Made by a program: the position numbers and the translations under genes. A DNA stretch of 64,000 bases, taken from positions 51,646,001 through 51,710,000 of the forward strand of contig CM060734.1 in the NCBI GenBank assembly GCA_030704615.1. The letters are read 5' to 3'. Below are positions 1,769-63,700 of this stretch, piece after piece; position 1 is the stretch's first letter; every line of letters starts with the position of its first letter. The notes beneath the pieces are model-generated. The model had not been told where the DNA came from, searched no databases, and saw only the letters and a program-made list of their open reading frames with translations. This stretch comes from Takakia lepidozioides. Lineage: Eukaryota; Plantae; Bryophyta.

Positions 1769-1837
1769 ATCCTGAGCCTGTGGTCTATTTGTGTTGTGTT
1801 ATGATTGAAGTTACGACGATCCGATTGCAAGAACACA

Positions 1838-18984: not shown

Positions 18985-19455
18985 AGTTGACCATCTACCC
19001 ATGCATGTTTCTTGTAGCTATTGATCCACAGGGAATCATATGTAATCTTGTGCTTGAAATATGGCCCTCTCGGATGAATTTGGACCCACTCTCTATCCCT
19101 GCTCCTTCAGCTATCTCTACCTCTCTGTTCCAGCAAACACCCTAACTCTACTTATCACTCAAGTTCCTATGTTGAGCTTCCAACAGACATTCACCTTTTT
19201 ACACCAACGAGCTAACTTGCAGAATTTAACCTGAAAATTGAGGGACGATTCTGATAACAAAAGAAACAAGCTGAAATGTGTTAAAGAAGGTGCTCACAGG
19301 TCTCCAAAGCCTCCATCCCACGCCCTTGCTGTGCATATCCTACAATCATCGCCCTCCATGACAACACATCTCGTTTAGCCATACTGTTGAACACTCCCTT
19401 TGCATCCTCGATGCACCCACATTTTGCATACATGTCCACGAGAGTACTGTTCAGA
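18985..19455 (-). pseudogene. Second PPR remnant: one S-P pair plus a duplicated PPR leader region
   Basis: 19290-19455 encodes NSTLVDMYAKCGCIEDAKGVFNSMAKRDVLSWRAMIVGYAQQGRGMEALE. 18985-19200 is similar to 17675-17950. Confidence 0.85.
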
Positions 19456-20437
19456 AACAATTTAGCTACATCATAGCAACAGGTTTGTATAAACTCCAAC
19501 CTAAACTCCACCTTCACGTGGCATGTGCATTTTTCTTGTGCCTTCTTTCTTGTTCCATCAGAAGTGAATAGATGAGAAATTAGGATAGAAGTAGCACAGG
19601 GTAGCATGTGGAATGGGGTGTATGACAAAACAAAAAGTGAGCCCGATTCAAACCCGAGTAGCAGACATCGTATGGTCACACCATATTGGAATGTAGAGAA
19701 TATGGCTAGAGAAATCAAAGGATAGCCAACAAATCATACATACCTTTTTGTTCGCAGGTTGAAAACATGTGAAGATCATCCCCTTTACACCTAGCACCAG
19801 TCGCTATCGGAAATTTAAGAACTCTTTCTCACTCGCACCCAATCTTTTCTTTGAACCACAAATGTGTTAGTCCAACGACAGCCATGTGTCACATCCGCCA
19901 CCAAATCAGGAGTTAAAGTAGCAGTGCAGGCATACATGCAATTTCCTTCTCAGTTTCATTCTCTTTGAGAGTAGACCCCACAATTCGCTCTCTTGAGGAT
20001 TGGTATGCCACAGAGAAAATGTCCTCAACAATACATCACAGACACCATTCGCAGGGAGAGGTTAATGAACAAAGGAGAGTAATCAATGAAGCAAGACACT
20101 CTCACCTTTTAAAAAGAAACATCGTTTCACCATTACTTCATTTCATCTAATCATTCGTTAAATGGATGGACAGAATGGAAAGAATGAATTGGATGATATT
20201 TGCATGGATGTTGGATGGAATATGCGCGACCATTCGATTTCAAAAGGACGCGATGGTTCAGATGCTCTGCGACGACACCATATAAAGGGTGTGCTTGTTC
20301 AGCCCACCCTTCTGGCACTCCATTGTGTACGCAGAAGCGCTGTGGAAGTGCTAAGAGAGAGGTTTACTATTTCATGAGCAGAAAGAAATGAGCCATGAGC
20401 CATGAGCCGCATGAGCGGTGAGCCGAAGTCTAAGACA

Positions 20438-25907: not shown

Positions 25908-28290
25908 TGAGAAGTCCCTCTCTATGCATCGCTGCATCAACTCCAGCGATGGCTGCTACCTCATGATTCATGTACGTGGGCCAGAGCGCTTGGTTTTGCG
26001 GAACATCGGGTGCAGGAAATCTTTTCTCTCTCCCACTCTTTCTTCTCCCTCTCTCGCTATCCCCTTCTGTCCCAGGAAAGGTCGAGTCTTTAAGAGGGCA
26101 AATAACTTAGAAGGGAAGCCATGAGCCATGAACCAAAAACAGAAGTGGGAGGTAGAAGAGGAAATTCAGTCAGCGATTTTGCGATCTTTCATCCTTTCAC
26201 ATGTTTCATTCCTTTTTGTTCAAGGAAATTCTTCCTTTTCAGTAGAGTGTCCATGCAATTGCAAGAGCTGCCTGATGACAACGCTTGGTTGAAAGGAACA
26301 ATGCAAGCCCTGCCTCCCAGGAATAAACTAGTCCATGATTTGTAAGACCGAGGTTTTAATAGACAGATTGTCTGTGTAGTAGGTATGTTGGTTACAATCA
26401 GTTTCTGAAGATGTTCTCGTTGCCACTGGTTTCTTATTATGTTTGTGGCATCACACACACTGATAGTACCTTTACAGTCAACGCTGCTTGTGAAGGCATG
26501 AAATCCATGCTCCTACAAACAAAACCAGTTGTTCATGCCTCATCTCAAGAAGCTGACTTCCTGAAATGTAGAGAGCATTGCTAGTGTGTGCCCTTTATTC
26601 CGGCACAAGTGTTATTCGGATGGGTACGATTGGTTCCGACTTCAATGATGATGGAGGGGCTTCAGTCTCCCGTGAGGAGCTCCTGAGAAATTGGTTTGAT
26701 AGCATCATCAGCTTTCAGAGGCAAGGGGAAGAACCATGTATGAAGAGATCCCTCTGGTCAACTCATGCTTACACGTCCCTGTAAATTCTTGACATGGCCT
26801 GTCATAAGGTATTCCTTGACTTCGCTGTGTTGCTCACTTGAATTGCAATCATCACCATGCCGCCACACGAAGAGGGAAATTATGTCTCTGTGGTTGCAGG
26901 TCAAACTGAAGCACAAAATGGGAGAATGCAGCCATTGACCCTTTGGCTATGACATGACCAGGAGGGCACGGTCCCACTCCTTAACCACCTTCTACTTGAA
27001 AAAAATTTCTCCAAGCTTCTCCACATCAATATTTGGACACTTGGACATTGCCTGCAACCGCACGTAGCACTCTACAACACTCAGATCCCTTGGCAAGTAA
27101 CTAACTCATGAAGCCCACAACACAAACTGGGTGCATGCCATTTTGGCAACAACATGTGTAACCAGACCTAAATCTCAAGAAACAAGAACTCCCCTGAATT
27201 ACTAGCAAGGCATGATAAAAGCCACCAGCAAGCAGAAGTATCGCTTCCACAGGTGACAAAGGCTTGGGATCACTGCAAGTCTAGCTCCTCGATTCAATGA
27301 TCTTTATGGAAATATAATCAGCAAGACTAACATCATGCGATTTTGGATTGAGTGAGACCTGGCAACAACCAGAGGGGTGGGAGAGAGACACGAACTTGTG
27401 AAGCTCTCTTCTTCTTCACGTATGTAATGAAGACTAGCTTGCCTTCTGGGGTAACATGCCATTTGCTACAGCCTTGTGAACATAGGACGCCCCCGAATTT
27501 GCACCGAGGACACCGCAGGGAGGGGGGCGAAAGGACAACAGCAGAGCAGATTGACTCGGTGCAGGTATATCATACTTGAGGTTCTTTCGCTCAGCTTAGG
27601 CAGTCGAGACACTGCTGAAAGCTGTGACCTTTCTTCCCTCTGTTCTAGGTCGTATTTGTCGATTTAAAAGCTTTCTAGAAAATCTGAAATGCAACATCAC
27701 CACTCTTAAAGGTAAGTCCCACTATTGTAGCAATCTTTGGATCTCTTTCATACCAACCTCTTTCAATCTACAAAGATGGCACAGGGCTTTTTGGTTGGAA
27801 AAGTAATGGCAGCGCATCACCTTTCTCCTTCAAGTTTGAAATGATGCACTTTCTTTCATGCACATTGCTTGTTTCACCAGTAATCCCCACAAGAACAAAC
27901 TCCATCTTGAAAGTGGTGAAAGCGGTTAACATCCCGTACAACAATACATCGCCCGACAATTTTGGAGATGAACTTGGTGGCCATGTGGCAGTCACTACAC
28001 ACCCGAAGGTTCTTGATGACACGGATAGGCATCCCAGGAGGCATGCTGATCAAACCAAAAGCAATGGCCAGTTTCTCACTGTGGTGGCAAAGAGAAAACT
28101 CCTTTAGCTCCTCCTCCACATCATGCAATACAAAACGTGTGTCAGGCACATAGCCAGCAACCTTCATCTGCCCAGACAACCATTTCAGCTCACTCTGGAT
28201 CTCCTGAATTTGTGGATGCAATTTGTCATCTACAAGGAAAGTATGGATCTGGTTGTACACCTCAATGCAGCTGTGCCCTGGCTCCTTTCT
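25908..28290 (+). repeat. Segmental duplication copy 1 (about 2.4 kb, includes the DYW 3' end and downstream flank)
   Basis: Matches 31944-34231 at offset 6035-6036 and continues at 41261-41354. The ORF-track translations of the two copies are identical through the middle. Confidence 0.97.
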
Positions 28291-29877
28291 GATACCTCTG
28301 TCCTGCATCATCTTTCTTACTTTTGCTGTATCATTCCACCTACCAGCAGCAGCATAAATGTTTGATAGCAGCACATAAGTTGGAGCGTGCTGTGAATCCC
28401 ACTTGAGAAGGCATTCTGCTGCGCATTCTGCTACCTCCACATTGACATGAATTCTGCAAGCACCAAGTAAGGCCCCCCACACCCCAGCACCTGGTTCGAC
28501 CGGCATTTTGTAAATGAAGTCCTCTGCCTCATCCAATCGGCCTGCACGGCCAAGGATGTCCACCATGCAGCCAAAGTGCTCCACTGTAGGAGTGAGGCCA
28601 TGATCTTGGCTCATCGAATCAAAATACTGACGGCCTTCATCCACTAGACCCCCATGGCTGCATGCACAAAGAACACATGTAAAGGTGACACCATCTGGTT
28701 TCAACCCTTTCTTTCGCATTTGTTCAAATAGAGTGAGGGCCTCTTCACCACACCCATGCTGAGCATATCCAGTGATCATTGCACTCCATGAGACCACATT
28801 TCGTTCAGCCATATTGTCAAACACTCGACGTGCATCATGCATGCTCCCACATTTGGCATACATGTCAATGAGGGTAGTCTCAAGGATAATATCTGGAGCA
28901 ATTCCAGCTTTCACGATGTCAGCATGAACCTCCATACCCTTTTCGAGGGCTGCCAGGCTGGCACAAGCATTAAGAACACAGACAAACGTGACAATGTTGG
29001 GCATCACCCCTTTCAATATCATTTGCTCATAGATCTGGAAAGCCTGCATACCACACCCATGCTCAGCGTATCCTGCAATCATCGCACTCCACGAGACCAC
29101 ATTTCGTTCAGCCATATTATCAAATACTTGACGGGCATCCTTCAGGTTCCCACATTTTGCATACATGGCAGCAAGGGCAGTCTCCAGGATGATATCTGGT
29201 GCAATTCCCGATTTGATGATGTCCCCATGGACCTCTATGCCATTTCCCAAGGCTCGTAGGCTGGCACATGCCTTGAGAACACAAATGAAAGTGACATTGT
29301 CTGGAGTCACTCCTTCCCGTATCATTTTCTGATAGAGCTCAACAGCCTCCCTACCATGCCCTTGCTGAGAGTATCCTGTGATCATTATAGTCCAAGTAAA
29401 CACATTTCGTTCAGGCATATTGTCAAACAATTGCCGTGCATCCACCAAGCTTCTGCATTTGACATACATGTTGACAAGGTTGTTAAGTAGAAAGATGGTG
29501 GGCTTCAATCCACTTTGAATGATGTGGGCATGCACCTGCTGTCCCTCTGCTAGGCCTTGCATGTTGATGCACTCCTGCAAGAGACAGACATAGGTATCGG
29601 AGTCCACTGAAATGCCTTGTTGGTTCAAAATTTGTAGGGCCTCTTTCACCTCTCCTGCCATACATAGTGTCCTCACATCACCACATAGTAGTTGACCTTG
29701 TATCCTGGCAGCTAGCTCTGCTTTCACCCAAGGAGGATTTGACCAACTATCCATCCAAAGGGCCACCTTTGTGCATTTATGTTTGAAGTCTGGTGCTCTT
29801 GGACTTCTCTGTATGAACCACCCGAGAGCAGCTGAGAAGCCACAGAGTATTTTAACCACAAATGAGGCTACCACCAC
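27874..29877 (-). CDS. PLS-class PPR-E1-E2-DYW protein, organellar C-to-U RNA-editing factor
   Basis: L-S-(P-L-S)x2-P2-L2-S2-E1-E2, PG box [19 protein letters not shown], terminal DYW. The first in-frame ATG is at 29754; the true start may lie in an upstream exon. Confidence 0.95.
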
Positions 29878-31943
29878 TGATCTCCAAGCCTCCTCAAATA
29901 TGAGACAACAGCCTCGAGCAACCCACCTGGAAACACCATCCTACAACACCCTGCACCACTCTAAACATCCATAGCAGTAGGAAGAACCAGGTTTAAGCTG
30001 CCTTTTCAGCAATGAGAGACAAATATCATGCAGCTTCAGTCACAAGCAGTCCGTGACAAACTCTTTAACATACTAAATGCAACGTAGCCTCACCTTATGA
30101 ACACTGTTGTCCCACCACAGTGAAGGATCCGAGAAAAACTCCTGCCAGAGCCGTTCCGTGCTCTCTGCTTGATCTGTGTGCAGGAAGCACAAGACCATGA
30201 GAAATTGCCGGTGCTACTTGCCACGGCTTGTAGTAAGGAAAACTAGTGCTTCAAGATAGATCCTCTACAGCTCCTACTTGTCCTGGGCCTTAAGGAAAGG
30301 CTATCATAGGCTTTCCATAAGAGGAGGCACCCACCCTTTCTAAGGCATGGTTTGACTATTACCATCATAGCCAGATGAGACACATATCTGTATCAAATTG
30401 GGGAACAGATACTATCCTCTAGAAAGCCCTTCACACAAGCATCAACTTGCTGTGTGTGAGCTGCCCAGCAATTAGAGCCCAACGGGGCCAGGGCTTTAGG
30501 CTCAGCTTCAAAATTTTGAAAGAGCAGAGGTGCAGGGAGAAGGGGAAAGAGAGAGAAATGAAGAGATATATCACTATACAGTTTACCACAGCCTTGTGGA
30601 TACAGACATCATGCCTAATTTGGAGGGACCAAAAAGGGCAGAAAAGGGTAACCTGAATTCACCGATTCCATAAAGCTCAATGTGCTCATGAACACCTGTC
30701 TCCCGCATGACACTAACCCACACATCATGCCATCCCCACTTGTGTCCCACACACCACAACCGGCCAGTATCTTAGACTGGAAAAACCTCCCCATAAACCA
30801 TGCCCACAGGCAAAATGATTAGCCGAGGACCAATTGTCGTTCCTTTCACTCTTTAGCGCTTCTGCAACAGACTTGACGATTCATTCCACTGTAGAGAACT
30901 CAACCACTATTCAATCAACAGATGCATTTGGCCCAATGGGCATGGGTGTATTTAACAAAGTGAGCCAGACTCTGATTATGACAGGATAAAAGAGACAGAG
31001 AGTGGCACCTAAGAGCCAATGCCCTTCCTGCCCTACCTGTCCTTAACTATTGGCATACATATGTGAGAATAACACTGACCTCAGCAATGTTTTGGCGAAT
31101 GCTGCTCTTGTCGACGAAGGCCATAAGGGAGCGCCGCAAGGCAGGCATGCCCTCCACAAGGGTCATGCTTTGTGTCTGTCTGCTCCTTCAAATCTGCTAC
31201 CGGAATTTGGACGTTACTTCACAGTATGTAAAAGTTACCAAGACAAAAAAGAACTCGAGAAATAAATAGGACCCAGAAAGAAAGGCGTTCAGAGTAGGTG
31301 CAAATAAATCAAGCTATCAATCTCCTCAGGGTGGAAGGCACCTGGCATAGGTCGAGTTAAACCTTTTCGAGCTTGTCTTGACGGTTCTCCAAACAATTAC
31401 AAGTTCAGTACGGGATTGGAAGCTGCAGAACTGTAATTTATTGGTCATTACACATTGGGGGATTAGAGGAGAAAGAGGAAAGTTGAGGCCACTGGGAAGC
31501 TGATGTGTGAAGGCAGAGATGGTTACAAATGATGCAGCGATTTGAAGGGGTAGTGTAGAGTTCCACAAAGAGTGTAAAACGCGATGACAATTTGACAACA
31601 CAGGACAACACGAGCTGCACCCACATTATCCTCGTCCATTGCTCGTTGGAAATGGCACATTTTGCAGTAAGATTCTCTCAGCTCACCACAGACAATTAAA
31701 ACACTAAGTTTCGGCATTTCTACTACCCAATTCTGTGCATCACCCAATTCCACACATTTTCCTACAGGGATCCCCGCCTCCATCGAGCAAAGTACAAATT
31801 TCCTCCTTGGGAAAACCAAGTTGCTGTTCTAAATGCAAGGAAAATTCGATTCGATGGTGCACGGAGACAAAAACCTCGCACAGGACGTAAGAACCGTGGG
31901 GAAAGAGCGAACGGAAGAGGCCGTGAGACAGCAGCAGCCGCGA

Positions 31944-34231
31944 TGAGAAGTCCCTCTCTATGCATCGCTGCATCAACTCCAGCGATGGCTGCTGCCTCAT
32001 GATTCGCGTACGTGGGCCAGAGCGCTTGGTTTTGCGGAACATCGGGTGCAGGAAATCTTTTCTCTCTCCCACTCTTTCTTCTCCCTCTCTGCTATCCCCT
32101 TCTGTCCCAGGAAAGGTCGAGTCTTTAAGAGGGCAAATAACTTAGAAGGGAAGCCGTGAGCAGTGAACCAAAAACAGAAGTGGGAGGTAGAAGAGGAAAT
32201 TCAGTCAGCGATTTTGCGATCTTTCATCCTTTCACATGTTTCATTCCTTTTTGTTCAAGGAAATTCTTCCTTTTCAGTAGAGTGTCCATGCAATTGCAAG
32301 AGCTGCCTGATGACAACGCTTGGTTGAAAGGAACAATGCAAGCCCTGCCTCCCAGGAATAAACTAGTCCATGATTTGTAAGACCGAGGTTTTAATAGACA
32401 GATTGTCTGTGTAGTAGGTATGTTGGTTACAATCAGTTTCTGAAGATGTTCTCGTTGCCACTGGTTTCTTATTATGTTTGTGGCATCACACACACTGATA
32501 GTACCTTTACAGTCAACGCTGCTTGTGAAGGCATGAAATCCATGCTCCTACAAACAAAACCAGTTGTTCATGCCTCATCTCAAGAAGCTGACTTCCTGAA
32601 ATGTAGAGAGCATTGCTAGTGTGTGCCCTTTATTCCGGCACAAGTGTTATTCGGATGGGTACGATTGGTTCCGACTTCAATGATGATGGAGGGGCTTCAG
32701 TCTCCCGTGAGGAGCTCCTGAGAAATTGGTTTGATAGCATCATCAGCTTTCAGAGGCAAGGGGAAGAACCATGTATGAAGAGATCCCTCTGGTCAACTCA
32801 TGCTTACACGTCCCTGTAAATTCTTGACATGGCCTGTCATAAGGTATTCCTTGACTTCGCTGTGTTGCTCACTTGAATTGCAATCATCACCATGCCGCCA
32901 CACGAAGAGGGAAATTATGTCTCTGTGGTTGCAGGTCAAACTGAAGCACAAAATGGGAGAATGCAGCCATTGACCCTTTGGCTATGACATGACCAGGAGG
33001 GCACGGTCCCACTCCTTAACCACCTTCTACTTGAAAAAAATTTCTCCAAGCTTCTCCACATCAATATTTGGACACTTGGACATTGCCTGCAACCGCACGT
33101 AGCACTCTACAACACTCAGATCCCTTGGCAAGTAACTAACTCATGAAGCCCACAACACAAACTGGGTGCATGCCATTTTGGCAACAACATGTGTAACCAG
33201 ACCTAAATCTCAAGAAACAAGAACTCCCCTGAATTACTAGCAAGGCATGATAAAAGCCACCAGCAAGCAGAAGTATCGCTTCCACAGGTGACAAAGGCTT
33301 GGGATCACTGCAAGTCTAGCTCCTCGATTCAATGATCTTTATGGAAATATAATCAGCAAGACTAACATCATGCGATTTTGGATTGAGTGAGACCTGGCAA
33401 CAACCAGAGGGGTGGGAGAGAGACACGAACTTGTGAAGCTCTCTTCTTCTTCACGTATGTAATGAAGACTAGCTTGCCTTCTGGGGTAACATGCCATTTG
33501 CTACAGCCTTGTGAACATAGGACGCCCCCGAATTTGCACCGAGGACACCGCAGGGAGGGGGGCGAAAGGACAACAGCAGAGCAGATTGACTCGGTGCAGG
33601 TATATCATACTTGAGGTTCTTTCGCTCAGCTTAGGCAGTCGAGACACTGCTGAAAGCTGTGACCTTTCTTCCCTCTGTTCTAGGTCGTATTTGTCGATTT
33701 AAAAGCTTTCTAGAAAATCTGAAATGCAACATCACCACTCTTAAAGGTAAGTCCCACTATTGTAGCAATCTTTGGATCTCTTTCATACCAACCTCTTTCA
33801 ATCTACAAAGATGGCACAGGGCTTTTTGGTTGGAAAAGTAATGGCAGCGCATCACCTTTCTCCTTCAAGTTTGAAATGATGCACTTTCTTTCATGCACAT
33901 TGCTTGTTTCACCAGTAATCCCCACAAGAACAAACTCCATCTTGAAAGTGGTGAAAGCGGTTAACATCCCGTACAACAATACATCGCCCGACAATTTTGG
34001 AGATGAACTTGGTGGCCATGTGGCAGTCACTACACACCCGAAGGTTCTTGATGACACGGATAGGCATCCCAGGAGGCATGCTGATCAAACCAAAAGCAAT
34101 GGCCAGTTTCTCACTGTGGTGGCAAAGAGAAAACTCCTTTAGCTCCTCCACATCATGCAATACAAAACGTGTGTCAGGCACATAGCCAGCAACCTTCATC
34201 TGCCCAGACAACCACAGCTCACTCTTGATCT
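31944..34231 (+). repeat. Segmental duplication copy 2
   Basis: Near-identical to 25908-28202; interrupted at 34232 by a 7-kb insertion. Confidence 0.97.
33909..34231 (-). pseudogene. Duplicated DYW domain, C-terminal part; the N-terminal part lies at 41261-41354
   Basis: Matches the DYW of 27874-29877 except for two single-codon deletions (K, E) and one substitution at the insertion junction. HSE, CxxC and DYW are intact. Confidence 0.93.
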
Positions 34232-37200
34232 ACCACACAATTATAATGCCCCCATTCACTGGGCGATCTCAAACAGCCAGCTCTGGCCCTCATTATCTTG
34301 TCCCGTGTCACACCATCAGCCCACACCCTAGTCAAGGTAGCTTCTGCTTCACAAATCAAACAACACCCAAAACCACCAAGCCTACAACCAAACTACACTG
34401 TCAATGCACATGACTGCCTTAAATCCCCAGACACTACACACACCTAGTGTAGTATATATATGCTGCCAAACACAAATATTATATACCACACTTTCCTACA
34501 TTACATCTAGCATTACCCCACAGGAAAATAACAAACCCGAACATAGACATTTTTGCTCACCAAAACCCGGTCCACAAATTACCTTAGCTGCTACTCCTCC
34601 AAATTCATGTATGCAAATGGTAAGTGCCAAGCAACCCTTGTTTAATACATATGGCCTGCTGTGCCTGAACATTGTAACATCCCTACTACCTTGGCCCACC
34701 ATAGAAGATACAATACTTGCTGGAAGAAAAAACTGCATTTACACAAAACCGCCCACATTAATCAGATCATATGACTATGCTACACATCTCCTAGGGTTCA
34801 GACATATATACCTGCTGGTGATCTCTCATACCATAACAACACCCCCGACCTGTCTGGTTGGCCACATGGACAACATTACTCGGCTGCTGGATCCTCTCTG
34901 TCTGATAATGCATCACGCTGTACTAACCCCGCTTGCCCCCCCATTCCCTTATCCATACAAAAAATGGACACTCCAATTCCAAAATTCCACTACAAAACAA
35001 ACTGGATACAATCACATGCCCCTTCAAAAATCATATGTACGGCTTGCTACATCCACTGACCATAATATAAAACCCCAATGCTGGATACCTTGTTACTGGC
35101 CCACCTCTTCTACTCTGGACTTGTCGTCCTTACCCCCACAATGCTCTGCAAATCGCAATAACTGCAAACCCATGAACAACTATATGCCACCCATTACCAC
35201 TACCTCGCACAATCAATCTACTTCCTAGAACCCCATTTACTGGCCCCCGTACACAACCCTCAGAACAGCACATACCTCAACAAAGACTGCTCCATCCTCT
35301 ATGCCAATAACTACTACAAAAACAGCCGCATACCTATATACTACACAATTAAGACAGACTGAATGCCAAATACAAAATACCACTGTTCATACCCCTGGGG
35401 CCGCCAAGCAGACTACAAATATTGCCAAGCGGTTATTATCACACGAAGGTAGATCTCTGTCTATAACTGAGACAACACCCCCTCCCAAGCAACTGCCCTG
35501 CTACAACACACAAGATACACCACTTGCTGTAAAAAGCTGCGCCCACATCACCCCCACCACAGCAGTAAACCCATATACATATGCTACAAAAACAATTGCA
35601 TGCCTATATAGTTGGCAGACATTGTCCACAGATACAGCAATGGCGCACCTGAGGCGTGACTCCACGTCTAGCAATACCTCTAAAATTAACAACACACAAA
35701 CAAAAAAGAAATACCTGTCACAACGCATCATTCAAAAGATCCTTGCTTCAATCACAAGAAGGTCTCATGCCGCAATAAAATTCTATTCCCAACACATTGC
35801 ACAGCGCGACCTCCAGCTGTGTATCATTAAATCGCTTACTCCATCCCACTGTCCCCCTCTATACCATGTTCAGAGTCAAGACCCCAAGCAAGGCCCCCTC
35901 TGTGTAATCACATTTGACAAAGCCTCTGCCAACATAGAACCAAAAAACAGAACAGGAACCAATCAATTATGCTTACCAAACCCATGTCCACAAAACACCT
36001 CCGTTGATATCCCTCGAAACCCCATGCAGCCTACAAATACTGTCGCACATCTCTTGCCGGACGCGGATAGATCTTTGTGTGTAACTGATGCAACACCCCC
36101 TCTCTCTTAACTGCCTTGCTACACCATGCAAGATACATCATTTGTTATTAAAAGCTACATCCACATCGATTGGCAGCTACTGTATGCAGATACAACATTG
36201 ATGCACCTGCGGCCCGATACCACATGCAGCAATATATTTAGAACTCATAACACACGAACAAACCATACTGATTCCTTCCTAGTAACCATACACATGCAAA
36301 CTATTTACAGCCTGATATATGAATACTTTCAGAAATCCACGATGCTCTACAACCACATATCAATTACAACGAACTGTACCTCAGCCCCCATTAAACAGCC
36401 CATGTTAGTTACAAGGTTGAGGCATACTGAATGCCAATTACAAACGCCTGGCAACACCATGATACCAAAAAATCAGATACAACGAACCATGAATCATGCT
36501 GCTTCATGATTACATCCCTGGCCCCCCTTACCGCCATCAAAACTCAGCAATATGCACTCTACCGCCACAGTGCCCCATTCAAAAGACTCGAGCCTCAATT
36601 TCAATATTATGGTCTCACATCACCAACAAATACTACCAAGACATTGCAAACTGCTCCAACCAACTATACATCAACAGCGCTCCGCACAACTCACAGATCA
36701 TGCAATATCCCTCAACTCTCGCTACCACATATCACAAATCTCAAATCCCTAATTCACTAATGCCTCCAAATTGGGCTGCTGTCAGCCCCTATAACCTCAT
36801 GCATCTCTCACAATTGCCCCACTGCAACAGGAAACAATTACCCTCACAACCTGGCAAAATAGCTCCATCTACACTACCAAACCAGACGCTCTCTTACCCC
36901 CAGCATTCCACCCTTGCTCCTACCTGCAACCGACTCACAAATACTTGGACTGAGTCTAAATCAACCAGATACACATAGACAGGCCCCTTACTTCTGCACT
37001 GCACACCGGATCCTACAAAAACCCATTAAAAAACCCCTACTAATTCCACACATAATGCAGGCAGAAAGCTCACCACATAAAAAAGAGCTGCCATCTGCAG
37101 GACCTCCAAAAGTCGACCTTGCCCCCCCCTGTCACACTCAAAACTCACTCGTAACCACCCTGACAACCACCCTGACAACGCTCAACCTGTCAAGCACTCA

Positions 37201-37759
37201 ACCTCTACTGAAGCATACCTCCGTGAGAGCTCTTGTTGCCCGGAACCAAGCCCATGCACAGATCCAAGCCCACTGTGCCCCGCCCAACTTTCAAACCCAT
37301 GGATATCGTCCAAATAACACACTCCACATTCATCCAAGGGGCTTTTTCCCTATCCATTTCATCCCCATTCACACCAAAAAACGAAATACAAAACTATAAT
37401 AAATAATGCAATAATTAATAATAAAAATAACAAGCCTCAAACGGCAATTGGCTCTCTTGCTTTGTACCCCCAACTCATTTGCCCAGTTTGGGAAGGTCAG
37501 GCAACCCGGACGAAGTAGGAGGGTCGATGGGAGGTAGACAGCTGGGTGGTTTTTTTTTTTTTTTTAAAAAAAATGGGCATGGGATGGGGCGGTGGGCCCC
37601 CTCCACCATGGCCTCCAAAAACTATATAAGGAGGGTAAGGAGTGTATACATTTTATTAGAATTCTCCGGCCTCTCTTGGGTGGGCTCTGCAAGCCGAGCC
37701 CCCTTAGAAAAAAAAAAATTGGAACCTCAACCATCATCTAATTAGAATATCTCTTACTA

Positions 37760-37942
37760 CCGTAGTACCTTTGGCAAGTTCAACAATCATCTGTCGAATA
37801 TTTATTTTATTTTGAGAATTTCATTTCAATATATGGAACATTCTCAAAGATGCTTACATTTAATTTCACAAAATCAATTTCCAAAATTTTCAACAATCTT
37901 TGAAATATTAAAATTTGTGTCGAAATTGCCAAGGTACTACGG
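37760..37942. mobile_element. Tc1/mariner-type MITE with TA target duplication
   Basis: TIRs ccgtagtacctttggcaa / ttgccaaggtactacgg, flanked by TA at 37758-37759 and 37943-37944. Confidence 0.88.
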
Positions 37943-38016
37943 TATGCAACACCAACAATTACTACACTTTTTGTACACGTTTGGTTTCTGATGCTTTGCT
38001 TTGGTAACAACATAAG

Positions 38017-38291
38017 CAGTGTTTTTCTTAAGAAATTTGGAAAACAGCACGAGTGGCTACAGAGTTTTGCAAAAAATAGCTGTATATTCTGTTCATCCAC
38101 TGAATTTCATCCCTTCATGTACTTCAATCCATTTATATCATCCATATTTGGCGAATTCATCCATAATTTATTTTTTATTTGGAGAAATTTGGCGATTTCA
38201 TCCATGAAATAATAGGGAATTTGCGACAGAATATTTTATTTTATTTTTTGAGGTCGAAATCTGGCGAAAATTAGCCAATAAAAAAGCGCTC
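38017..38291. mobile_element. hAT-type MITE with an 8-bp target-site duplication
   Basis: Ends cagtgttttt ... aaaaagcgctc; aacataag at 38009-38016 and 38292-38299. Confidence 0.85.
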
Positions 38292-41260
38292 AACATAAGA
38301 GGAAGGTAAGACTATAAGACTAGGGAGCATGACTCAACACCAATCAGCACCTTGACACGGTGTAAGGTACTTTGACCACATTTTCTCCATTGACTTGCAT
38401 GTCTCCGCAAAGTCTCTCTCTACAAGAGAGAGCCAATAAAAATAATGGTTTAAAAAATAATTCTCATATATTCGGACTCTGTCTTCTCATAACACATAAA
38501 CTGAAACCCAACAATATTACATATGCACATACACTATTACAGGCATACATCTACTAAATGATTAAGTTGCCACCATACATCCCACCCTACATTCTATCAG
38601 AAAAAACAACACATCAGATTCCTAGGCACATAGCCATACTCACTCCCTAGTGCCAGAGCCAAAGATGGGCAGTCATCAGCGCTGAGTAACTTGCTATGAC
38701 TACAACAAACAACTACCAGCAGTTAACAACCCTTTTCAAAGTAGCAAAAATAGGTCAACACAGACTGCAAGAGGAACTGAATATGATTCTGAATCAGGAT
38801 ATATAACCGCAACACTCTCTTGCTGCTCCTCCCCAACGAATTCCTTCTGTTGAAAATACAAACCCACATCCTGCTTTGCAAGCCAAGAGTCTCCTGCCCC
38901 CATTGTAGCTGTCAACGGAACCCCAAATTAAAATTACTCCCCCCTCTTCATAATATTAGCACTGTAATCACAGTATAAATCCACGCTCGCCTATTACTGT
39001 ACCGATGTTGTATTGACGGAACCAAGGCATGTAACCAAATTTTCTTACTGTCCCACAGCCACCAAAACACGACATTTGCCACTCAACTCCCTTCAAAGTA
39101 AAAGCCATATAAAAACACAACGCCCCTGTGAATTGGGCATCCCGCGCGCTACAGGTCCCATTCCATGCTCTCTCAAATTCAGACACACCACACATACTCA
39201 GGAAAAGGCCCTAAATATACATCAAACACTGAACCAACATCCTATATGGAAATGCCCAGCTAACTTTCAAGTACCAAGGCCACAAATATTCCAGAAATAG
39301 CTGCTTTCATAACTAACCAACACCAGCCCCTCATAACCATATGCCATCTACAGAAACACCTCCCCCCTCACTCCACAAACCCTAAAGAAGTCTTTCGCAT
39401 TTTAATCTTTTATCGAACTTGCAGGCCCAAATGCAAGCTGCTGCAGTATCCTTCACCTCGCAAAAAGCTTAACTGCAGGAACAAAAACATGACGTATCCT
39501 TAACGCAACCCAGCCCCCAATGCACTAGTGCAGTTACCCAGGAGCCTCTATGGTATTGGTACTACAACTTTAGTTGAGGCCTACGCTATAACGTTGGGAA
39601 CGCAGCTGCATGAAGCTCTAAATGATGTTGATAAATTGGGGAATATTTATCAAGGACTCCTTAAGCATGTCGCCTCGAAATTTGGTGGCTTAGCAAATTT
39701 ACCGGCTATCAACCCCATTGCATGCACCAACTCCCCTATCACCAGGACCCTCTTCATACTCAAACATATGCACATCTCTGGACACTACTATGCGCACAAT
39801 CCAACTTCATTACACATCCCTAGAAAATGCTTGGGACACAAGCCCACAAATTCATCTCTTCAACCCAGACAACATACCTCGTAAACAAACCACTCTAAAA
39901 TTCTTTATGCAATTTAACATCACCACAGTCAGACAACTTACAGATGCTAATGGCACCAGACTTATCGACCCACATGCTTTTCGACTAAAATACCATAAAC
40001 CATCATCGCGCTCCCAACATGTTCATTTGGAACACCTCCAAACACTACTATGTTTTCCCACTCCTGCTTGTTTAACCCACACATGTCCACGACAATGTAA
40101 CTCTTCGCCCCATCACCCATGGGAGCTACTCCCTCGCTATTCATCGAGCCCGACGCAAAACCAAATCCAATCAATATTCCATGGCTTCGCCCTAAACCCA
40201 ACAAGCGTCCACCCCATACAACCAGCTCAAACACCCCAACCACAGCCACCACAACCAAATACTATATCGTCCCCACTTGCTATTCAACCCACATGACACC
40301 CCGTAACACCCGCCCACACATTAGAGGAAATACAAGGCATAACTCAAAAAATGTCTTTGGATCAATATGGAGCCACATGTGTCAAAACTCTATATAATTG
40401 TCAATGGAAGAGATCAACCCCCAAACGTAACACCTTGGAAAACAATGACCAACTTTTTAGCACCCATGGTAATCCAAATTTACACCATAATATTCAAATG
40501 GTTACCGAATACCACCGACGAACCAACACCCACTACTTATCGCATATTCATACCCAACATGCAGATGAACCACAAGCCAATGATAGACGTTTCATCAGCC
40601 CGCCACGAAGTATCCCAAATCTACACATCTCTATAGCTGAATGTAACCCAGATAAAGACATCATGAAGTCCCAGGCCCACATTCACACTCACAATAACTT
40701 GGCACACATATATGGACCACTAGGGTACTACATTGGTAACATAACACTCCAAAGATTGGAGTGGTTATGGAAAAGATTTCATTCCAACCCACTCCACCTC
40801 ACAGACTTGCACACGCCGTCAGCATTTGCAGTACAAGTCTCCAGACTCATCCAACGCTACGCCCAAGACCTACCACCCAAAACACCCACAACAACAAACA
40901 AACTTTCACTTGCACACTCCCACTCGACCCTCCCCGCACTCCTTCTAGACTTCCTCACCACGGAGCTGCAACTCACTCACTCATATTACTCTAACCCTCT
41001 CACATGCCCATTGGGTTTATCTACTTACTCGAGCTTACACAACATTGATCAACACTTTGGATCCCTGGGGGCTGCAAGGTCCTACCAATGACAAGGGCGA
41101 GGGTTTGCACACCCCCATAATGTCGCTTCTGCCAGTGAAGCGCTTCATTGGGCGCGCATTGCTGCACATATGGTGACCCCTGAAAGGGGGCAGTACCCGC
41201 AAGGGGAAGAGGCTCTTATTTACGCTAGCTTTGGTTGGCGTCATATATATATATATATAT

Positions 41261-41597
41261 GGATCTCCTGAATTTGTGGATGCAATTTGTCATCTACAAG
41301 GAAAGTATGGATCTGGTTGTACACCTCAATGCAGCTGTGCCCTGGCTCCTTTCTCAATGCTGCCCCTTTGATAAAACGCTCTTCATGATTCTTCACAAGG
41401 CTGCCACTGATGGTGACAGTCCGGATGCCATATTTGTCTGTCACATCAGCATGAAGGTAAGAAAATGAAGAAGAATTTATGTTAGTCTTCTCAAAGTTTT
41501 CATACGTACTCAAAACAATACACTCAAAGGTTGCATCTCTCACACTGTAATCAAGATCATCTACAGTCCAAAGAGGTCGGTTGCGTCTCACAGCCAT
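41261..41597 (-). pseudogene. Chimeric ORF: OB-fold/RPA-like N-terminus (probably Helitron-derived) fused in frame to the PG box and start of a DYW domain
   Basis: ATG at 41597, about 81 non-PPR residues (TVDDL...FECIVL...LHADVTDKYGIRTVTI...FIKGAAL), then [31 protein letters not shown], identical to the PPR gene. Junction at 41354/41355. Confidence 0.75.
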
Positions 41598-41708
41598 TAC
41601 ACTATGCGAAATAGAAGATTACCTGAAAACAATGAAGATAAAGGAAAGAAACAATAGCTAAACAATTTGTGCTTCAGACATCCTTTATTTTATATAAAAT
41701 AGAGAATG

Positions 41709-41865
41709 TAGGCCAGTGGTAATGGGCACTTACCACGTTGGATGTGGTTGTAGGTTCAAACCACGGTCTGGTGTGTAATGAAGGTGTCTACCTTTCGGCT
41801 GGAAGGTAGTAGCCCTTGTGAAGAGACACCATAAGTTAGGCTCCCTTCGGGAGACGTCAAACTTT
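41709..41865 (+). mobile_element. tRNA-derived SINE with target-site duplication
   Basis: A box taggccagtgg (41709-41719), B box ggttcaaacc (41753-41762), anticodon-like stem accac/gtggt, short T-run end, flanking direct repeat tata(a/g)aatagagaatg. Confidence 0.85.
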
Positions 41866-42449
41866 TATAGAATAGAGAATGGCTTTGAGTGTAGTAATAT
41901 AAGAATATTTCTATATTCTACATTGACGAGCTTCGAGAGAAGCGGGTCCAATAGTATTTAACATCCAAGAAACCGCCATCACGACTGAGGTACTTCATCA
42001 ATTGATGATTTATGAATGAGGGTGGTGCCAAATCTTTTTAGAGAAGTTGGAGTCATTTAAATATTAATATTTTAAATAAAGTTCATGACCTGCCCTTACA
42101 CACGACCGGCTGGCTTCTATAACAACAAACCCTTTATATCCATGACCGGCAACGAAAAAATGAGCATAGATTATGCATATCCGTCGGACAACATAAATCT
42201 TAAAATCCTCACAAGCCCGGGCCGGCAGCTTCTAATGGGTTTTTATATTGACAAGTCTGGGGCCGTAGGTCATGTTCTTAGTGACATACCTGCCCAACAC
42301 TGATTGCCACCTTTTTCATTTTAATTGAACTTTGACATTAAAGACACTAATTTACTCATTTCATTCATATTGCTTCTGGTTTGCTTATGCCAAGGGGGCC
42401 ATTCGAACGTAAAATTTGGAAGAAAGATATGAGCAAAGCTTAGTCTTTG

Positions 42450-42910
42450 ATGACGTTATGTGAAGCATGGGGATGGTAGGGAGGCCTTGAAGATATATGA
42501 GCAAATGATACTCCAAGAGGTGATGCCAGACAAAGTCACATTCACTTCCATTCTGAAGGACATCCTCGAAGCTCGACTTGTGCCAGATGTCATTCTGGAA
42601 ACTGTCCTGGTTGCCTTGTATGCCAAGTGTGGGCACATGAAGGATGCACGGCACTTGTTTGACAATGCAATGATTGCAGGATATGCCCCGCATGGCTGTG
42701 GTATAGAGGCCTTTGAGATGTATGAGCAAATGATACAGGAAGGGGTCAAGGCTAACAAAGTCACATTCATTGCTGCTCTGAAGCATGTGCCAGCGTGGCA
42801 GCCCTCAGAAAGGGTAAAGAGCTACATGCTGAAATCATTAAAGCTGGAATCATACCAGATATCACTTTGGAGAATACTCTTGTCGACATGTATGCCAAAT
42901 GTGGTTTGGC
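42450..42910 (+). pseudogene. PLS PPR pseudogene fragment with internal deletions
   Basis: KHGDGREALKIYEQM...PDKVTF, ILETVLVALYAKCGHMKDARHLFDN, LENTLVDMYAKCG; frameshifted. Confidence 0.9.
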
Positions 42911-44018: not shown

Positions 44019-47000
44019 TTATGCCCCATTCTCACAAATGTGGCAAATCCAATGAGCAGGAGGGGTTGTCCGTAGATTGGACGTCACACAGCTCCAATGG
44101 AACTCCAGTTCACACCAGTTACAGCACACAAAATCTGCCATGTCCACCTGCATACTACACACATTACAATGTACCCTCCATGCCACCCTTCGGGCAGGGC
44201 CATGCTCCACTTGTATCTTCTGACCACCGCACTCTTTGGGTTGCTGGTGAAGTGATTGTGAATTTGATGCACAATGCTGTTGCTTTGAGTTCAGCAAAAG
44301 AACTTGTGCCTCTGCATCCTGCCATGGCCCCACCTTCTGCTCAATCCCAAAATTAGCACAGTTTACCATTCCTGAACAACCTGATATGGACCTTCCTTTC
44401 CAGCTTCCAACATCAGCGCTCAAGATGAATTAAGTTGGTGTAAGAACGCATCGACACCAGGCAATGCAGATGGTACAAATTAAGGAGGTACCTCTTCCTT
44501 AGAAGACGAACTAAAAGTCGCATCTGCAAAACATGGGTGTATAGGGGAGGAGTCATCAAGCAACCTCCAAAATACACTCTTCCGTGGCCGTGTTTTATCA
44601 GAGTCTTCATCACACACCCCACTTTTATCAGGAACTTCGTCATCCACCCATGTTTTGTGAGAAACTTGGTCATCAACCCCTGTTCTATCAGGAACTTCGT
44701 TATCCACCTCGGTTTTATCAGGAACTTCATCATGCAGCCTTCTTGTATCAGGATTTTCATCACCCAGCCTTGTTTTACCAGGACGTTCATCATCCGCCCT
44801 ACCATTCTCATGATTGCTATCAATGTTTGTGATGCTTTGATCCTCAATTTCCCTGTGGGCATTTGTTGAGTTAGTCAAACTCCCTCCCAGAGATACAATT
44901 TGGACCTTTCTTTTCTTCGAATGGAGGGACAAATGACCCCAGTACTTGGGCTGTTCATTGAAAACCTTGTGGCAGGTTTCACATTCGAATGTTCCATTTT
45001 TAGTATCTGTAGTGGCAGGCATCCCCACTGCACTCCCATCCATACCAGTCTCTGCCTTGCGCTTCCCACTCTGATCTGGCCCTCTCACCGCTCCATGGGA
45101 CTTTTTTGAGTGGTGATTCCGCACAGAGGGTCTGTGTGCAGGCAAGTCAGGAGACTCAAAGGCATCAGATAGGTGGACACCTTCATGATTTCCTTCAAGA
45201 GGACCTCCCTGCTCCACACCCATGGAGTTGGTGGCAGCACCCTGAGCATGGCCCATACTCACACGATGTGCCAGCAGCATTGCTTTGGAGCTCCAAAACA
45301 GGCCACATACGTCACAGTTGAAAGTGCGAGTGTGCTTGGAGCGTCGCAAGTGCTTCCGAAGTAAACTTCCTTTCCTAAATTCTTTATAACAAGTGGGACA
45401 TTTGTTCTCACCTGGCTTGGTGAGCTGGGCAGGGATTGGCTGCTGCACTTGCAAAAGGGGAGGATGTTCAATCCGGCTAGCATCCAAGCCACCCACCATG
45501 TAGCCTCTAGGACTTTTCCAATCCTCAATTGCTTCATCGCACTCTTGCAAAGATACTTGTTCACCTTGCTCCTGCTGGATGTGTGCTGGGATGTCCCTAT
45601 TCATGCTCCCACCTCTGTCTGGCTCACTTGAGTTGGTGGCTGTCCTCTTGCCTTCGGGTATGTGACTAGGCAGCCCATGCACATGTAAGCTGAGATGGCG
45701 TGATGGAGGACCCCCTTCACAAGCTGTAGCTGGTGATGTGACAATGTCCTTACATGTTGTCGCTTGCTGCAATGTGGCCACCATGTGCGCTGCAGCCTCC
45801 TTGAATGATCCCCACATCTTGCCTTCTGGGCTGCATCCACCCACAAGAATACTGCTAGCCATGAGAACCAAAAGCATTCCTTATCTAAATCCATCCTCCA
45901 TAACCCTCAACCGTCCACATTTCAAGCCAAAATCTAGGTACTGATTGGAGGCTTTCACTGTTGGATGGGCTTCAAACAGAAAGTCGAACCAAGCAGTGCA
46001 GTATATGCCTATAGAAAAGGATGGATTGCTTCTGGCGTAAAAATCTGGCTTCATATTTGGTCTACAGTGTTGGGAAACATTGAGCTATGGCACAAATGGA
46101 TGTTGAGATGGATCAAGTCTATATAGCCTTTCTGGCATACAAAAGGGCTTCAGAAAAACACATGAGCATCCACACACCAAAAATAAGTATTTGAGGAATG
46201 CTAGGCACCTTTGGTATACGTGAGGAGACTGTCCCTACCTGCGCCACTGTCTGTATTCAAAGAAAAGCCGACCACTCTTGTGACGCAAGCCCACGCACAC
46301 AGTCCAGCCCTTGGGAAAGCCCCGAGCATCCACAATCTTGCGCTTCATCTTGTAAGTTGACCACTTGCCATCCATGCTCTCCAACCGCTTCATCATCTCT
46401 TCAACTCTGTCGTCTTTGATTCTTACATCCTCAATATTCTCGTTTTCACCATTCAAGTCAACTTGTGATGATGCGCGTTGCAACTCACTGATCGTAACAC
46501 TTTTATCAGCTTCCTCCTGAGACCACCCCATAGGCCTATCTGCTGTGAATTGAGGCTGTTGCGAGGATCGAGCAAAGTCATCCTCACTCCCTCCACTGCT
46601 AATGCTACCTTCCCCCTGCATATCTCGCCTCCTCTTTCCGGCATTGCTCCCACGCCCCCGGTTTTTCCCTGTTGTGTCCCACTCAACTGCCATGTCCTCT
46701 GCTGGTGATATAGTGCTGATTGCCCCCGCATAGCCTTGCATCTGCTTCTTGTTGGTGCATCCTTGGGGCCCATCTTCCTTCTCCGGCGGGCTCCCTTCAG
46801 CCTTGGTTTGTAGCACAACAACCTCACGGCATGATGATTCATGGCTGCCCCCAGTAGGATCTTGAGGCCAAGGGAAAAATTGGGTGGGCGGCCTTGTCTG
46901 CGAAGCAGAGATGGTTCGTGGAAGACCAGCTTTGCCGTGCAAGGGTATACCATCCATCTGCCGGGGTCCCTGCTTCAAATCCCACTTGCTATAAGTCTGC

Positions 47001-49889: not shown

Positions 49890-49979
49890 ATGTCATATCA
49901 GAAACGTACACAATGTTGGAAAAATAATCACCTCATACCGAGACACTACCATTTAGACTTTTTCTAATACCCTTTTGTG

Positions 49980-52568
49980 ATGATGCAAGGTCGAGCAAAA
50001 TCTGGTGATGGAGTCTTCAAGACCTCTTGTAGTAACATGAGGCCATTATGTAAGGAAGAAAAGCTGAAAGAGGTGGTGCAAATTTTGACCAAGCATGGCG
50101 TCATGGTAGACTCCAATATGTATCGTGACTCCAATACGTATGTCTGCCTCTTGCAGGAGTGCATAAAGAGCAAAAACCTTGAGATGGGAAAGCAGGTGCA
50201 CACCCACATTATCCAAAATGGATTCAAGCCAAGTATCCTTCTGTTGAACACCCTTGTCAATATGTATGCCAAGTGCCAAAGCTTGGTCGATGCACGCCTA
50301 GTATTTGACCAAATGCCTAAACGAGATGTGTTTACGTGGACCACCATGATGACAGGATATGTGAGGCATGGGTGCAGTAGGGAGGCTTTGGACCTTTATC
50401 AGCAGATGATATCAAGAGGATTGATGCCCAACAAAGTCACCTTCATTTGCATGCTGAAGGCGTGTGCCAAGGTAGGAGCTCTGGCACAGGGTAAGGAGTT
50501 ACATGCTGACATCCTCAAAGCTGGAAGTGCACCAGATCCCATTCTGGATACTGCCCTCGCTGCTATGTATGCCAAATGTGGGAGCATGAAGGATGCACGT
50601 CAAGTCTTTGACAATATGGCTGAACGTAATGTGGACTCCTGGAGTGTGATGATCACAGGATATGTGCAACATGGGTGTGGGAGGGAGGCATTTGAAATCT
50701 ATGACCAAATGGTACGGGAAGCCGTAACACCCAACATTGTCACATTCATTCTTCTTCTCAAGGCCTGTGCTTGCCTGGTAGCCCCAGAAAAGGGCAAAGC
50801 GGTTCATGCTGACATCATCAAAGCTAAAATTCCACCTGATATCATCCTGGAGACTGCCCTGGTCAACATGTATGCCAAATGTGGGAGCATAAATGATGCA
50901 CGCCAAGTGTTTGATAAAATGGCTGAACGAAATGTGGTCTCATGGAGTGCAATGATAGCAGGATATGTGCAGCATGGGTGTGCTAAGGAGGCTCTCAAGA
51001 TCTATGAGCAAATGCTACAGGAAGTGGTAATGCCTGACAAAGTCTTGTTCAGTTGTGTTCTGAAGGCATGTGCTAACATAGCAGTTCTGGAAAAGGGCAA
51101 AGAGGTTCATGCACAAATCATCAAAGCTGGAATTGTGCCAGATACCATTCTGGGGAATTCCCTTGTTGACATGTATGCCAAGTGTGGGAGTATGAAGGAT
51201 GCCCAGAGTGTATTCAACAACATGGCTAAACGGGATGTTGTGTCATGGAATGCAATGATAGCAGGATATGGTCAGCACGGTTGTGCTAGGGAGGCCCTCC
51301 AACTATTTGAACAAATGCAACAGGAAGGCTTTAAGCCAAACATGGTCTCATGGAGTACAATGATTGCACGCTATGCTCAGCATGGCTGTGGTAAGGAGGC
51401 TTTGGAAATGTATGAGCAAATGATACGGGAAGGGGTGATGCCTGACAACATTGTGTTCACTTGCGTTCTCAATGCATGTGCCAGCCTAGCAGTGCTGAAA
51501 AGGGGCCGAAAGGTCCATGGTGACATCATCAGAGCTGGAATTGTTCAAGATGTCATATTGGAGACTGCGCTTGTTGACATGTATGCCAAATGTGGGAGCG
51601 TGAAGGATGGCCGTCAAGTGTTTGATAGAATTGTTGGACGAAATGTGGCCTCCTGGAGTGCAATGATTGCAGGGTACGGTCAGCATGGGTATGGTAGGAA
51701 GGCCATCCAACTCTTTGAACAAATGCAACAAGAAGGCTTGAAACCAGACAGTGTCATCTTTATATGTGTTCTCTCTGCATGTAACCACGTGGGCTTAGTG
51801 GAGGAATGCTGTCACTACTTTGAGTCCATGAGTCAAGATCATGGTCTTACTCCTACAGCGGAGCATTTTACCTGCATGGTGGATGTTCTCAGCCGTGCAG
51901 GGCGATTCCATGAGGCAGAGGACTTGATTAACAAACTGCCAATCAAGCCAGATGCTGCGGTGTGGGTGGTCTTGCTCGGTGCCTGCAGAATTCATGGCAA
52001 TTTGGAGGTAGCAGAACATGCAGCAAAATGCCTTCTCAAGTTGGATCCAAAGAAATCTGCAACTTATGTTCTGCTATCAAACATCTATGCCGCGGCTGGC
52101 AGGTGGGATGATACAGCAAAGGTGAGAAACATGATGCAGAACAAAGGTGTCAAAAAGGAACCAGGGCACAGCTGGATTGAGGTGGACAACCAGGTGCATA
52201 CTTTCACTGTAGGAGACAAGTTGCATCCACAAATTGACAAAATCCATACTGAGTTAAAGACATTGTCTAGGCAGATGAAGGAGGCTGGGTACGTGCCTGA
52301 CACGCGCTTTGTATTGCATCATGTGGGGGAGGAGCAAAAGCAGTTTTCTCTTTGCCACCACAGGGAGAAGCTGGCCATTGCCTTCGGGCTGATCAGCACA
52401 CCCTCTGGGACACCTATCCATGTCATCAAGAACCTTCGGGTGTGTGGTGATTGCCACACAGCCACCAAGTACATCTCAAAAATTGTTGGGCGAGCAATTG
52501 TTGTACGGGATGCGACCCGCTTTCACCACTTTGAAGATGGGTTTTGTTCTTGTGGGGATTACTGGTGA
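49980..52568 (+). CDS. PLS-class PPR-E1-E2-DYW protein (18 clear PLS repeats), organellar C-to-U editing factor
   Basis: Single long ORF with PGHSWIEV, HREKLA, CGDCH and terminal DYW. A targeting-peptide exon upstream is possible. Confidence 0.95.
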   Translation: MMQGRAKSGDGVFKTSCSNMRPLCKEEKLKEVVQILTKHGVMVDSNMYRDSNTYVCLLQECIKSKNLEMGKQVHTHIIQNGFKPSILLLNTLVNMYAKCQSLVDARLVFDQMPKRDVFTWTTMMTGYVRHGCSREALDLYQQMISRGLMPNKVTFICMLKACAKVGALAQGKELHADILKAGSAPDPILDTALAAMYAKCGSMKDARQVFDNMAERNVDSWSVMITGYVQHGCGREAFEIYDQMVREAVTPNIVTFILLLKACACLVAPEKGKAVHADIIKAKIPPDIILETALVNMYAKCGSINDARQVFDKMAERNVVSWSAMIAGYVQHGCAKEALKIYEQMLQEVVMPDKVLFSCVLKACANIAVLEKGKEVHAQIIKAGIVPDTILGNSLVDMYAKCGSMKDAQSVFNNMAKRDVVSWNAMIAGYGQHGCAREALQLFEQMQQEGFKPNMVSWSTMIARYAQHGCGKEALEMYEQMIREGVMPDNIVFTCVLNACASLAVLKRGRKVHGDIIRAGIVQDVILETALVDMYAKCGSVKDGRQVFDRIVGRNVASWSAMIAGYGQHGYGRKAIQLFEQMQQEGLKPDSVIFICVLSACNHVGLVEECCHYFESMSQDHGLTPTAEHFTCMVDVLSRAGRFHEAEDLINKLPIKPDAAVWVVLLGACRIHGNLEVAEHAAKCLLKLDPKKSATYVLLSNIYAAAGRWDDTAKVRNMMQNKGVKKEPGHSWIEVDNQVHTFTVGDKLHPQIDKIHTELKTLSRQMKEAGYVPDTRFVLHHVGEEQKQFSLCHHREKLAIAFGLISTPSGTPIHVIKNLRVCGDCHTATKYISKIVGRAIVVRDATRFHHFEDGFCSCGDYW

Positions 52569-63588: not shown

Positions 63589-63700
63589 GTAGCCCAGTGG
63601 TAATGCACACATACCACCTCGGAAGTGGTTGTGGGTTCATTCCAACCGAAGCTAGTACCCGCCCATGAAAGGATGGTTCCTACATATGGATTTGAAGAAA
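63589..63700 (+). mobile_element. tRNA-derived SINE head related to the 41709 SINE, with a different body
   Basis: gtagcccagtggtaat...taccacctcggaagtggttgtgggttcattcc aligns without gaps to 41708-41762. The 3' boundary is uncertain. Confidence 0.7.

Follow-up and report, generated by a model that had tools for sequence, protein, structure and literature searches.

A young chimeric DYW deaminase reading frame in Takakia lepidozioides, very probably a broken pseudogene

A chimeric reading frame was found on the minus strand of a 64,000-nucleotide stretch of the genome of the bryophyte Takakia lepidozioides (GenBank assembly GCA_030704615.1, contig CM060734.1, positions 51,646,001 to 51,710,000), herein referred to as the window. 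In this frame, a leader of 81 residues without pentatricopeptide repeat (PPR) character is fused to the PG box and the DYW deaminase domain of a neighboring PPR-DYW gene, and the fused frame is split by an insertion of about 7 kb. The locus is very probably a very young and already broken chimeric pseudogene, the product of a rearrangement accident, and its open reading frame (ORF) was presumably never functional.

The locus is best explained as follows. A 2,383-bp segment, comprising the end of the parent gene and its 3' flank, was copied locally, probably in a templated process such as break repair or replication template switching. With its upstream end, the copy abuts a solitary relic of a repeated and probably transposon-borne gene of the RPA70/DUF223-like type, beside or into which it would have been placed. 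The frames of the relic and of the DYW segment matched by a one-in-three chance, giving an ORF of 217 codons. A mobile-type element of 7 kb, generating a target duplication of 7 bp, then split the ORF inside the gating domain of the DYW part. The features on which this account is based are as follows (coordinates of the window, strand in brackets).

25908..28290 (-): segment from which the copy derives, partly within the parent gene and partly downstream of it
27874..29877 (-): parent PPR-DYW ORF of 667 aa, with PPR repeats, E, E+, and DYW
31944..33908 (-): duplicated 3' flank of the parent gene, equivalent to 25908-27873
33909..34231 (-): rest of the duplicated DYW domain with the stop codon, carrying two derived one-codon deletions
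34225..34231: left copy of the target-site duplication, TTGATCT, with one mismatch
34232..41259 (+): insertion of 7,028 bp ending in (TA)9, G-poor on the plus strand
41260..41266: right copy of the target-site duplication, TGGATCT (plus strand)
41260..41354 (-): duplicated PG-box piece, 100% identical to 28196-28290 of the parent
41355..41597 (-): N-terminal piece of 81 codons with its native ATG, the 5' part of a member of a multi-copy ORF family, probably with a DUF223/RPA70-like oligonucleotide-binding (OB) fold

Chimeric reading frame and source of its deaminase segment

The ORF at 41241-41597 (minus strand) opens at ATG 41597 and encodes the 81 non-PPR residues followed by 31 residues of the PG box; the fusion breakpoint lies at 41354/41355. 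Reading on from the ATG, this ORF enters the (TA)9 tract at 41259. Removal of the insertion (34232-41259) together with one copy of the 7-bp target duplication restores a single minus-strand ORF: 41597-41260 (338 nt) and 34224-33909 (316 nt) add up to 654 nt, that is, 217 codons and a stop codon. This join was verified by arithmetic and by piecewise alignments, and the two ORF pieces were searched separately. An earlier note on this DNA, made from the letters alone, had described such an open frame of about 217 aa after the cut 34232-41260; that cut is likewise in frame, and the length of the frame was confirmed. On the minus strand, an in-frame TAA codon (41621-41619) stands directly after ttttcag, the candidate acceptor of the earlier note, so that this frame can start no further upstream than ATG 41597. 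Because of this TAA codon, no upstream sequence can be joined to the frame of ATG 41597.

The downstream ORF piece (33909-34229, minus strand) matches the Pfam family DYW_deaminase (PF14432) over the whole model (positions 1-93 of 93, E = 6.1e-42, 141.8 bits). The HSE, CSDCH, and CSCGDYW motifs, representing the HxE...CxxC signature and the C-terminal DYW, are all present in the copy and identical to those of the parent. Thus, the fusion of about 81 non-PPR residues in frame to a PG box and a complete DYW domain, as reported in the earlier note, was also observed here. The upstream piece matches the E+ motif only at positions 1-17 of 28 (22.4 bits versus a cut-off of 24), because the insertion cuts this motif. 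The PG box, the gating domain, and the deaminase core are not found in one uninterrupted frame, since the 7,028 bp split them inside the gating domain.

The source of the deaminase segment was identified by comparison of the window with itself. Positions 31944-34231 correspond to 25908-28202 at 99.39% identity over 2,295 bp, and positions 41260-41354 correspond to 28196-28290 at 100%. Of the 2,383 bp duplicated, 417 nt are from the 3' end of the parent gene and 1,966 nt from the flank that follows it. The copy has kept the orientation of its source and is separated from it by about 3.7 kb, on the upstream side of the parent gene; the boundaries of the copy are sharp, with no microhomology beyond chance and no target duplication. 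The layout of the parent across position 28290 is common to a paralogue at 49977-52568 (81.8% identity over 1,253 bp). Therefore, 27874-29877 is the original gene and 31944-41354 is the copy.

The relative order of fusion and insertion follows from the target site. The insertion is flanked by TGGATCT (41260-41266) and TTGATCT (34225-34231), whereas the parent lacks the element and holds a single TGGATCT; the insertion therefore came after the fusion, in agreement with the order of events given in the earlier note.

Few differences separate the copy from its source: seven form a cluster at 25958-26128, two are deletions of 3 nt, and one is a base change inside the target duplication. Positions 26129-28107 are free of differences. 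The coding part differs from the parent by exactly two 3-nt deletions (parent positions 28183-28185 and 28108-28110) and one substitution, the latter inside the target duplication; as had been stated earlier, two whole-codon deletions are the only indels in this part. Both codons are retained in the paralogue (52152-52568), and the deletions therefore arose in the copy. On the evidence of these alignments, the duplication is extremely recent. Since no substitution distinguishes the copy from the parent over about 2 kb, the intact state of the HSE, CxxC, and DYW motifs is uninformative about selection.

The seven flank differences (25958-26128 versus 31994-32163) are confined to the 220 bp adjoining the far boundary of the segment, and the approximately 1,980 bp that follow are identical. 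This clustering may represent a patch of error-prone synthesis or the edge of a conversion tract.

Both codon deletions, as well as the site of the insertion, are located in the interval from the PG box to HSE. This region is the gating domain, and removal of its beta-finger markedly lowers editing (Takenaka et al., PMC7611903). The two codon deletions in this domain would be expected to harm the function of the encoded protein.

Leader family and the possible involvement of a Helitron

The 81-residue leader was used as a query in an exhaustive HMMER search of 1.84 billion representatives. In total, 19 hits were found, including 13 true relatives and six long repeat proteins. The latter were set aside: they match only a short 'DVTD..G..TVTIS' stretch, and four of the five scanned carry phage baseplate BppL_N motifs. 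The 13 relatives (71-174 aa, 34-56% identical) align over nearly the whole leader and have the start methionine in common. A profile search with the leader family retrieved 168 clusters, all of them named 'hypothetical protein' or unnamed and most of them from metagenomic assemblies. The leader thus belongs to an unannotated family of short ORFs (P0002-P0149; L001-L007) with at least 168 clusters at 90% identity, mostly on metagenomic eukaryotic contigs. No Pfam domain was found among the 120 profile hits listed of the 168 clusters (67-255 aa). None of the leader relatives that were retrieved and read (71-174 aa) runs on into a PG box or a DYW domain.

The leader of the window is a truncated member of this family. 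Longer members extend for 60-100 further residues ('..RLENF..K.K..Y.KGD.DW.I.LS..TKV...F...'), which the window copy lacks; its alignment stops at '..IKGAAL', the family position between '..KKGxFL' and 'RLENF..'. Relative to the family alignment, the window copy ends ahead of the final strands of the putative first OB barrel, with approximately the first three strands and the helix region remaining. The incompleteness of the barrel, like the possibility of a rearrangement accident, had been given as a caveat in the earlier note; the former was borne out, and the latter is the preferred explanation.

In a tblastn search with 143 family and other retrieved proteins, the only match in the window was at 41346-41600. 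Insertion of the 2.4-kb copy into a continuous OB gene was considered and rejected: the frame beyond 31943 is unlike the family, and the tblastn match is confined to 41346-41600. At the DNA level, no similarity was found between positions 41260-42900 of the window and the loci of the relatives.

The assignment of the family to the OB fold was addressed with several methods. No Pfam family was found for the 81-aa leader at E<=10. Among 37 relatives scanned against Pfam, weak DUF223 matches were found in four (best E 0.032) and a RADX match in one (E 0.0074); none of the 37 reaches the Pfam threshold for DUF223 (PF02721), and no other Pfam family recurs. In the ESM Atlas, the full-length member P0052 scores 0.93-0.94 against clusters of DUF223, REPA_OB_2, and 'RPA 70 kDa first OB fold', with 191-193 of 256 features common to the three best DUF223 clusters and with all ten best hits from one clan. 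Scores of 0.87-0.90 against OB-fold clusters were obtained with the window piece. These resemblances are taken as a lead and not as proof. AlphaFold2 models had a mean predicted local distance difference test score of 48.7 for the window piece and 41.5 for P0052 (33-row alignment), a confidence insufficient for comparing folds. Among PDB sequences, the only match to a profile was an irrelevant one, a lipoate-protein ligase (E 0.14). The signals are weak but consistent, and the leader family is probably a distant relative of the DUF223/RPA70-like OB fold. Like DUF223 (PF02721) and RPA70-like proteins, including Helitron-borne RPA-like genes, it is multi-copy with copies that look decayed; it differs from them in that no member reaches the Pfam threshold. 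The RPA-type OB fold suggested for the N-terminus in the earlier note is therefore retained as a family resemblance, with the qualification that the Pfam matches to DUF223 are below threshold and the barrel is cut off in the window copy. The leader is acidic, with three Asp among residues 1-20, and on this composition it seems unlike a transit peptide.

At the locus of one relative of the leader (L001), a fragment of a PIF1-like helicase follows 8 kb downstream on the same strand, which may point to a Helitron. An RPA-like gene is often found in plant Helitrons, and these elements often capture pieces of genes (PMC4683698, PMC3288121). Thus, the OB-like piece and the DYW fragment could be the cargo or the remnant of one non-autonomous Helitron, in which case the same pseudogene would have been formed by another mechanism. 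This alternative is improbable. An 8-bp-stem hairpin is found just inside the far boundary of the segment, in line with this alternative, but the hairpin is also present in the parent copy, and the far boundary ends in ..TCTCA rather than CTRR. Helitron termini (5'-TC...CTRR-3') were not found at the boundaries of the duplication, and neither a Rep/PIF1 helicase nor any other part of the leader family was found within the window. Additionally, Helitron RPAs were found only in monocots and dicots in one study (PMC4683698), whereas Takakia is a bryophyte, and the short distance of 3.7 kb between copy and source is a better fit to local repair synthesis. Of the Helitron link made in the earlier note, only the neighborhood of L001 is left in its favor; the window itself contributes no Helitron termini and no helicase.

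Element inserted into the chimeric frame

The insertion of 7,028 bp contains two further features.

37481..38560: block of different composition inside the insertion, about 79% similar, in inverted orientation, to positions 460-1134 of the window
40351..41091 (+): 3'-most ORF of the insertion, encoding a PCIF1_WW-like protein with homologues P0150-P0155

The insertion has no long terminal repeats (LTRs), direct terminal repeats, terminal inverted repeats, or poly(A) tail; its end is formed by (TA)9. No reverse transcriptase or other retroelement domain was found in its 28 ORFs on both strands. The earlier note had called this element a retroelement, a classification that is not kept here, as no LTR, reverse transcriptase, or poly(A) tail was found. 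On the plus strand, the content of G is 12-14%. Stretches of 295, 293, 264, and 200 codons on this strand contain no stop and exceed those of all 300 composition-matched simulations, and the insertion is not regarded as junk.

Homologues of the ORF at 40351-41091 were found down to E 5e-31, and two of them (P0153 and P0154) are above the Pfam threshold for PCIF1_WW. Positions 39519-41166 are colinear with a metagenomic contig, L008, in which G is about 11%; across the family, which includes L008 and L009, the sense strand has 11-14% G and about 30% C. Because homologous contigs from elsewhere carry the same skew (G 11% in L008), the G-poverty is a trait of the family. Derivation of the insertion from a retroelement hypermutated by G-to-A (C-to-U) changes was considered, in view of the neighboring deaminase gene, and rejected, as the mismatches between internal repeats are balanced (A/G 15 versus C/T 16). 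Judging from these similarities, the insertion belongs to a G-poor mobile family encoding a PCIF1_WW-like protein. The ORFs of the homologues extend well past the point at which the insertion ends in the window, and the window copy may be 3'-truncated. The block at 37481-38560 is probably a nested repeat. In the homologue P0153, the sequence continues to 'IYTDGS', residues similar to those at the beginning of an RNase H domain; this similarity was not confirmed by Pfam.

Prospects of function, related systems, and genomic surroundings

A different explanation of the locus is a young functional chimeric gene, encoding a PPR-less DYW deaminase that was expressed before the insertion or is expressed in other haplotypes. 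Such a protein would act in trans, like DYW1 and DYW2 of Arabidopsis, or its partial OB module would target single-stranded nucleic acid outside the organelles. Short DYW proteins are able to work in trans (PMC7076377; PMC7611903), and the in-frame ORF of 217 codons, its native ATG, the intact HSE, CxxC, and DYW, and the OB-type signal of the leader are all in line with this explanation. Nevertheless, a functional gene is considered very unlikely. No sign of constraint can be read from the zero divergence between copy and parent. The OB barrel lacks its last strands, and each of the two deletions affects the gating domain. In the sole genome available, from one individual, the frame is interrupted and no uninterrupted allele was found, and such an architecture is absent among the leader relatives retrieved. 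No RNA signal was found: of the sampled words, fractions of 0.03 and 0.00 occur in the RNA-labelled runs of the species, in contig-based runs that drop rare transcripts. When metagenomes were scanned for the chimeric N-terminus, two relatives of the leader, at 43%, were the only matches, and no copy of the locus was found.

Three points weigh against the pseudogene explanation. The native start codon, the complete PG box and DYW domain, and the restriction of indels to whole codons would also fit a functional young gene. The RNA signal is lacking in runs of a type in which rare transcripts are dropped, and the locus could be transcribed. The DNA comes from one individual, and an uninterrupted allele may be present elsewhere. 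That such an allele exists, is transcribed, and yields a cytosolic or nuclear DYW deaminase of 217 aa, brought to single-stranded nucleic acid by the RPA-like leader or by a partner, is given very little credence.

For the same locus, the earlier note had drawn a parallel with a natural base editor. This parallel is abandoned, as the OB part is truncated, the intact DYW domain reflects the youth of the copy, and no DYW domain was found in the retrieved relatives. The likeness to engineered base editors exists on paper only, in the position of a binding-module remnant N-terminal to a cytidine deaminase; here, in contrast to those proteins, part of the binding module is missing. As an RNA deaminase, the DYW domain is autoinhibited and depends on a PPR/E context (PMC7611903).

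An assembly artefact, in which 41354/41355 would be a mis-join of reads from the parent gene with an unrelated repeat, is hardly credible: the 95 bp beside the junction are 100% identical to the parent and the DNA runs that contain the stretch are all from one sample, probably the assembled one, but in four runs 0.77-0.94 of the 31-mers sampled from 41262-41900, junction included, are present, and neither the private differences of the copy nor the insertion it carries, with a regular target duplication, would result from a collapse or mis-join.

The preferred explanation of a broken pseudogene places the locus close to the partial-duplication pseudogenes of plant PPR-DYW genes. As in those, a 3' fragment and its flank were copied locally without the PPR array, and a mobile element was inserted later. 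The locus differs from them in that the fragment is in frame with the start of a transposon-type OB gene and forms a clean ORF of 217 codons. DYW1, DYW2, and MEF8 of Arabidopsis likewise combine a PG box with a DYW domain and are entirely or nearly devoid of PPR repeats. These proteins, however, are conserved, expressed, and organelle-targeted, with known E+ partners, whereas the chimeric locus is not conserved in the retrieved relatives and has two deletions in the gating domain, a broken frame, and an acidic N-terminus.

The locus is of interest as a datable example of a PPR-DYW cluster shedding gene fragments, in which a DYW fragment gained a start codon from what is probably a transposon relic. 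If an unbroken allele were expressed and active, it would be a natural experiment in the retargeting of a DYW deaminase through a foreign N-terminus. Two by-products of the analysis may be more useful: the large unannotated family of DUF223-like ORFs and the G-poor mobile family with a PCIF1_WW-like protein.

The window as a whole is a rearranging PPR-DYW cluster. PPR/DYW genes and fragments were found at 16309-17523, 19291-19456, 27874-29877, 42453-42904, 49977-52568, and 53427-54360. Only those at 27874-29877 and 49977-52568 are intact genes, and the remaining pieces are fragments, one of which is inverted and located only 0.9 kb upstream of the chimeric ORF. Both intact ORFs have weak N-terminal hits to Transpos_assoc (PF13963), at residues 77-126 in 27874-29877 (minus strand) and at residues 46-85 in 49977-52568 (plus strand).

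A repeat resembling a short interspersed nuclear element (SINE), with the B-box-like sequence GGTTTGAACC, is located just upstream of the chimeric ORF at 41700-41865 (minus strand). No tRNA was found in this repeat by ARAGORN, and no Rfam match was found in 31000-42900, a region that covers this copy. Comparison of the repeat with the 3' end of the insertion (blastn-short) gave only 7-8-mers. A partial second copy of the repeat, with 84.6% identity, is present at 63588-63639. Two further ORFs were found in the surroundings: a C2H2 zinc-finger ORF of 465 aa at 44480-45877 (minus strand), upstream of the chimeric ORF and on the same strand, and an AIG1/GTPase-like ORF of 450 aa at 1805-3157 (plus strand), at the start of the window.

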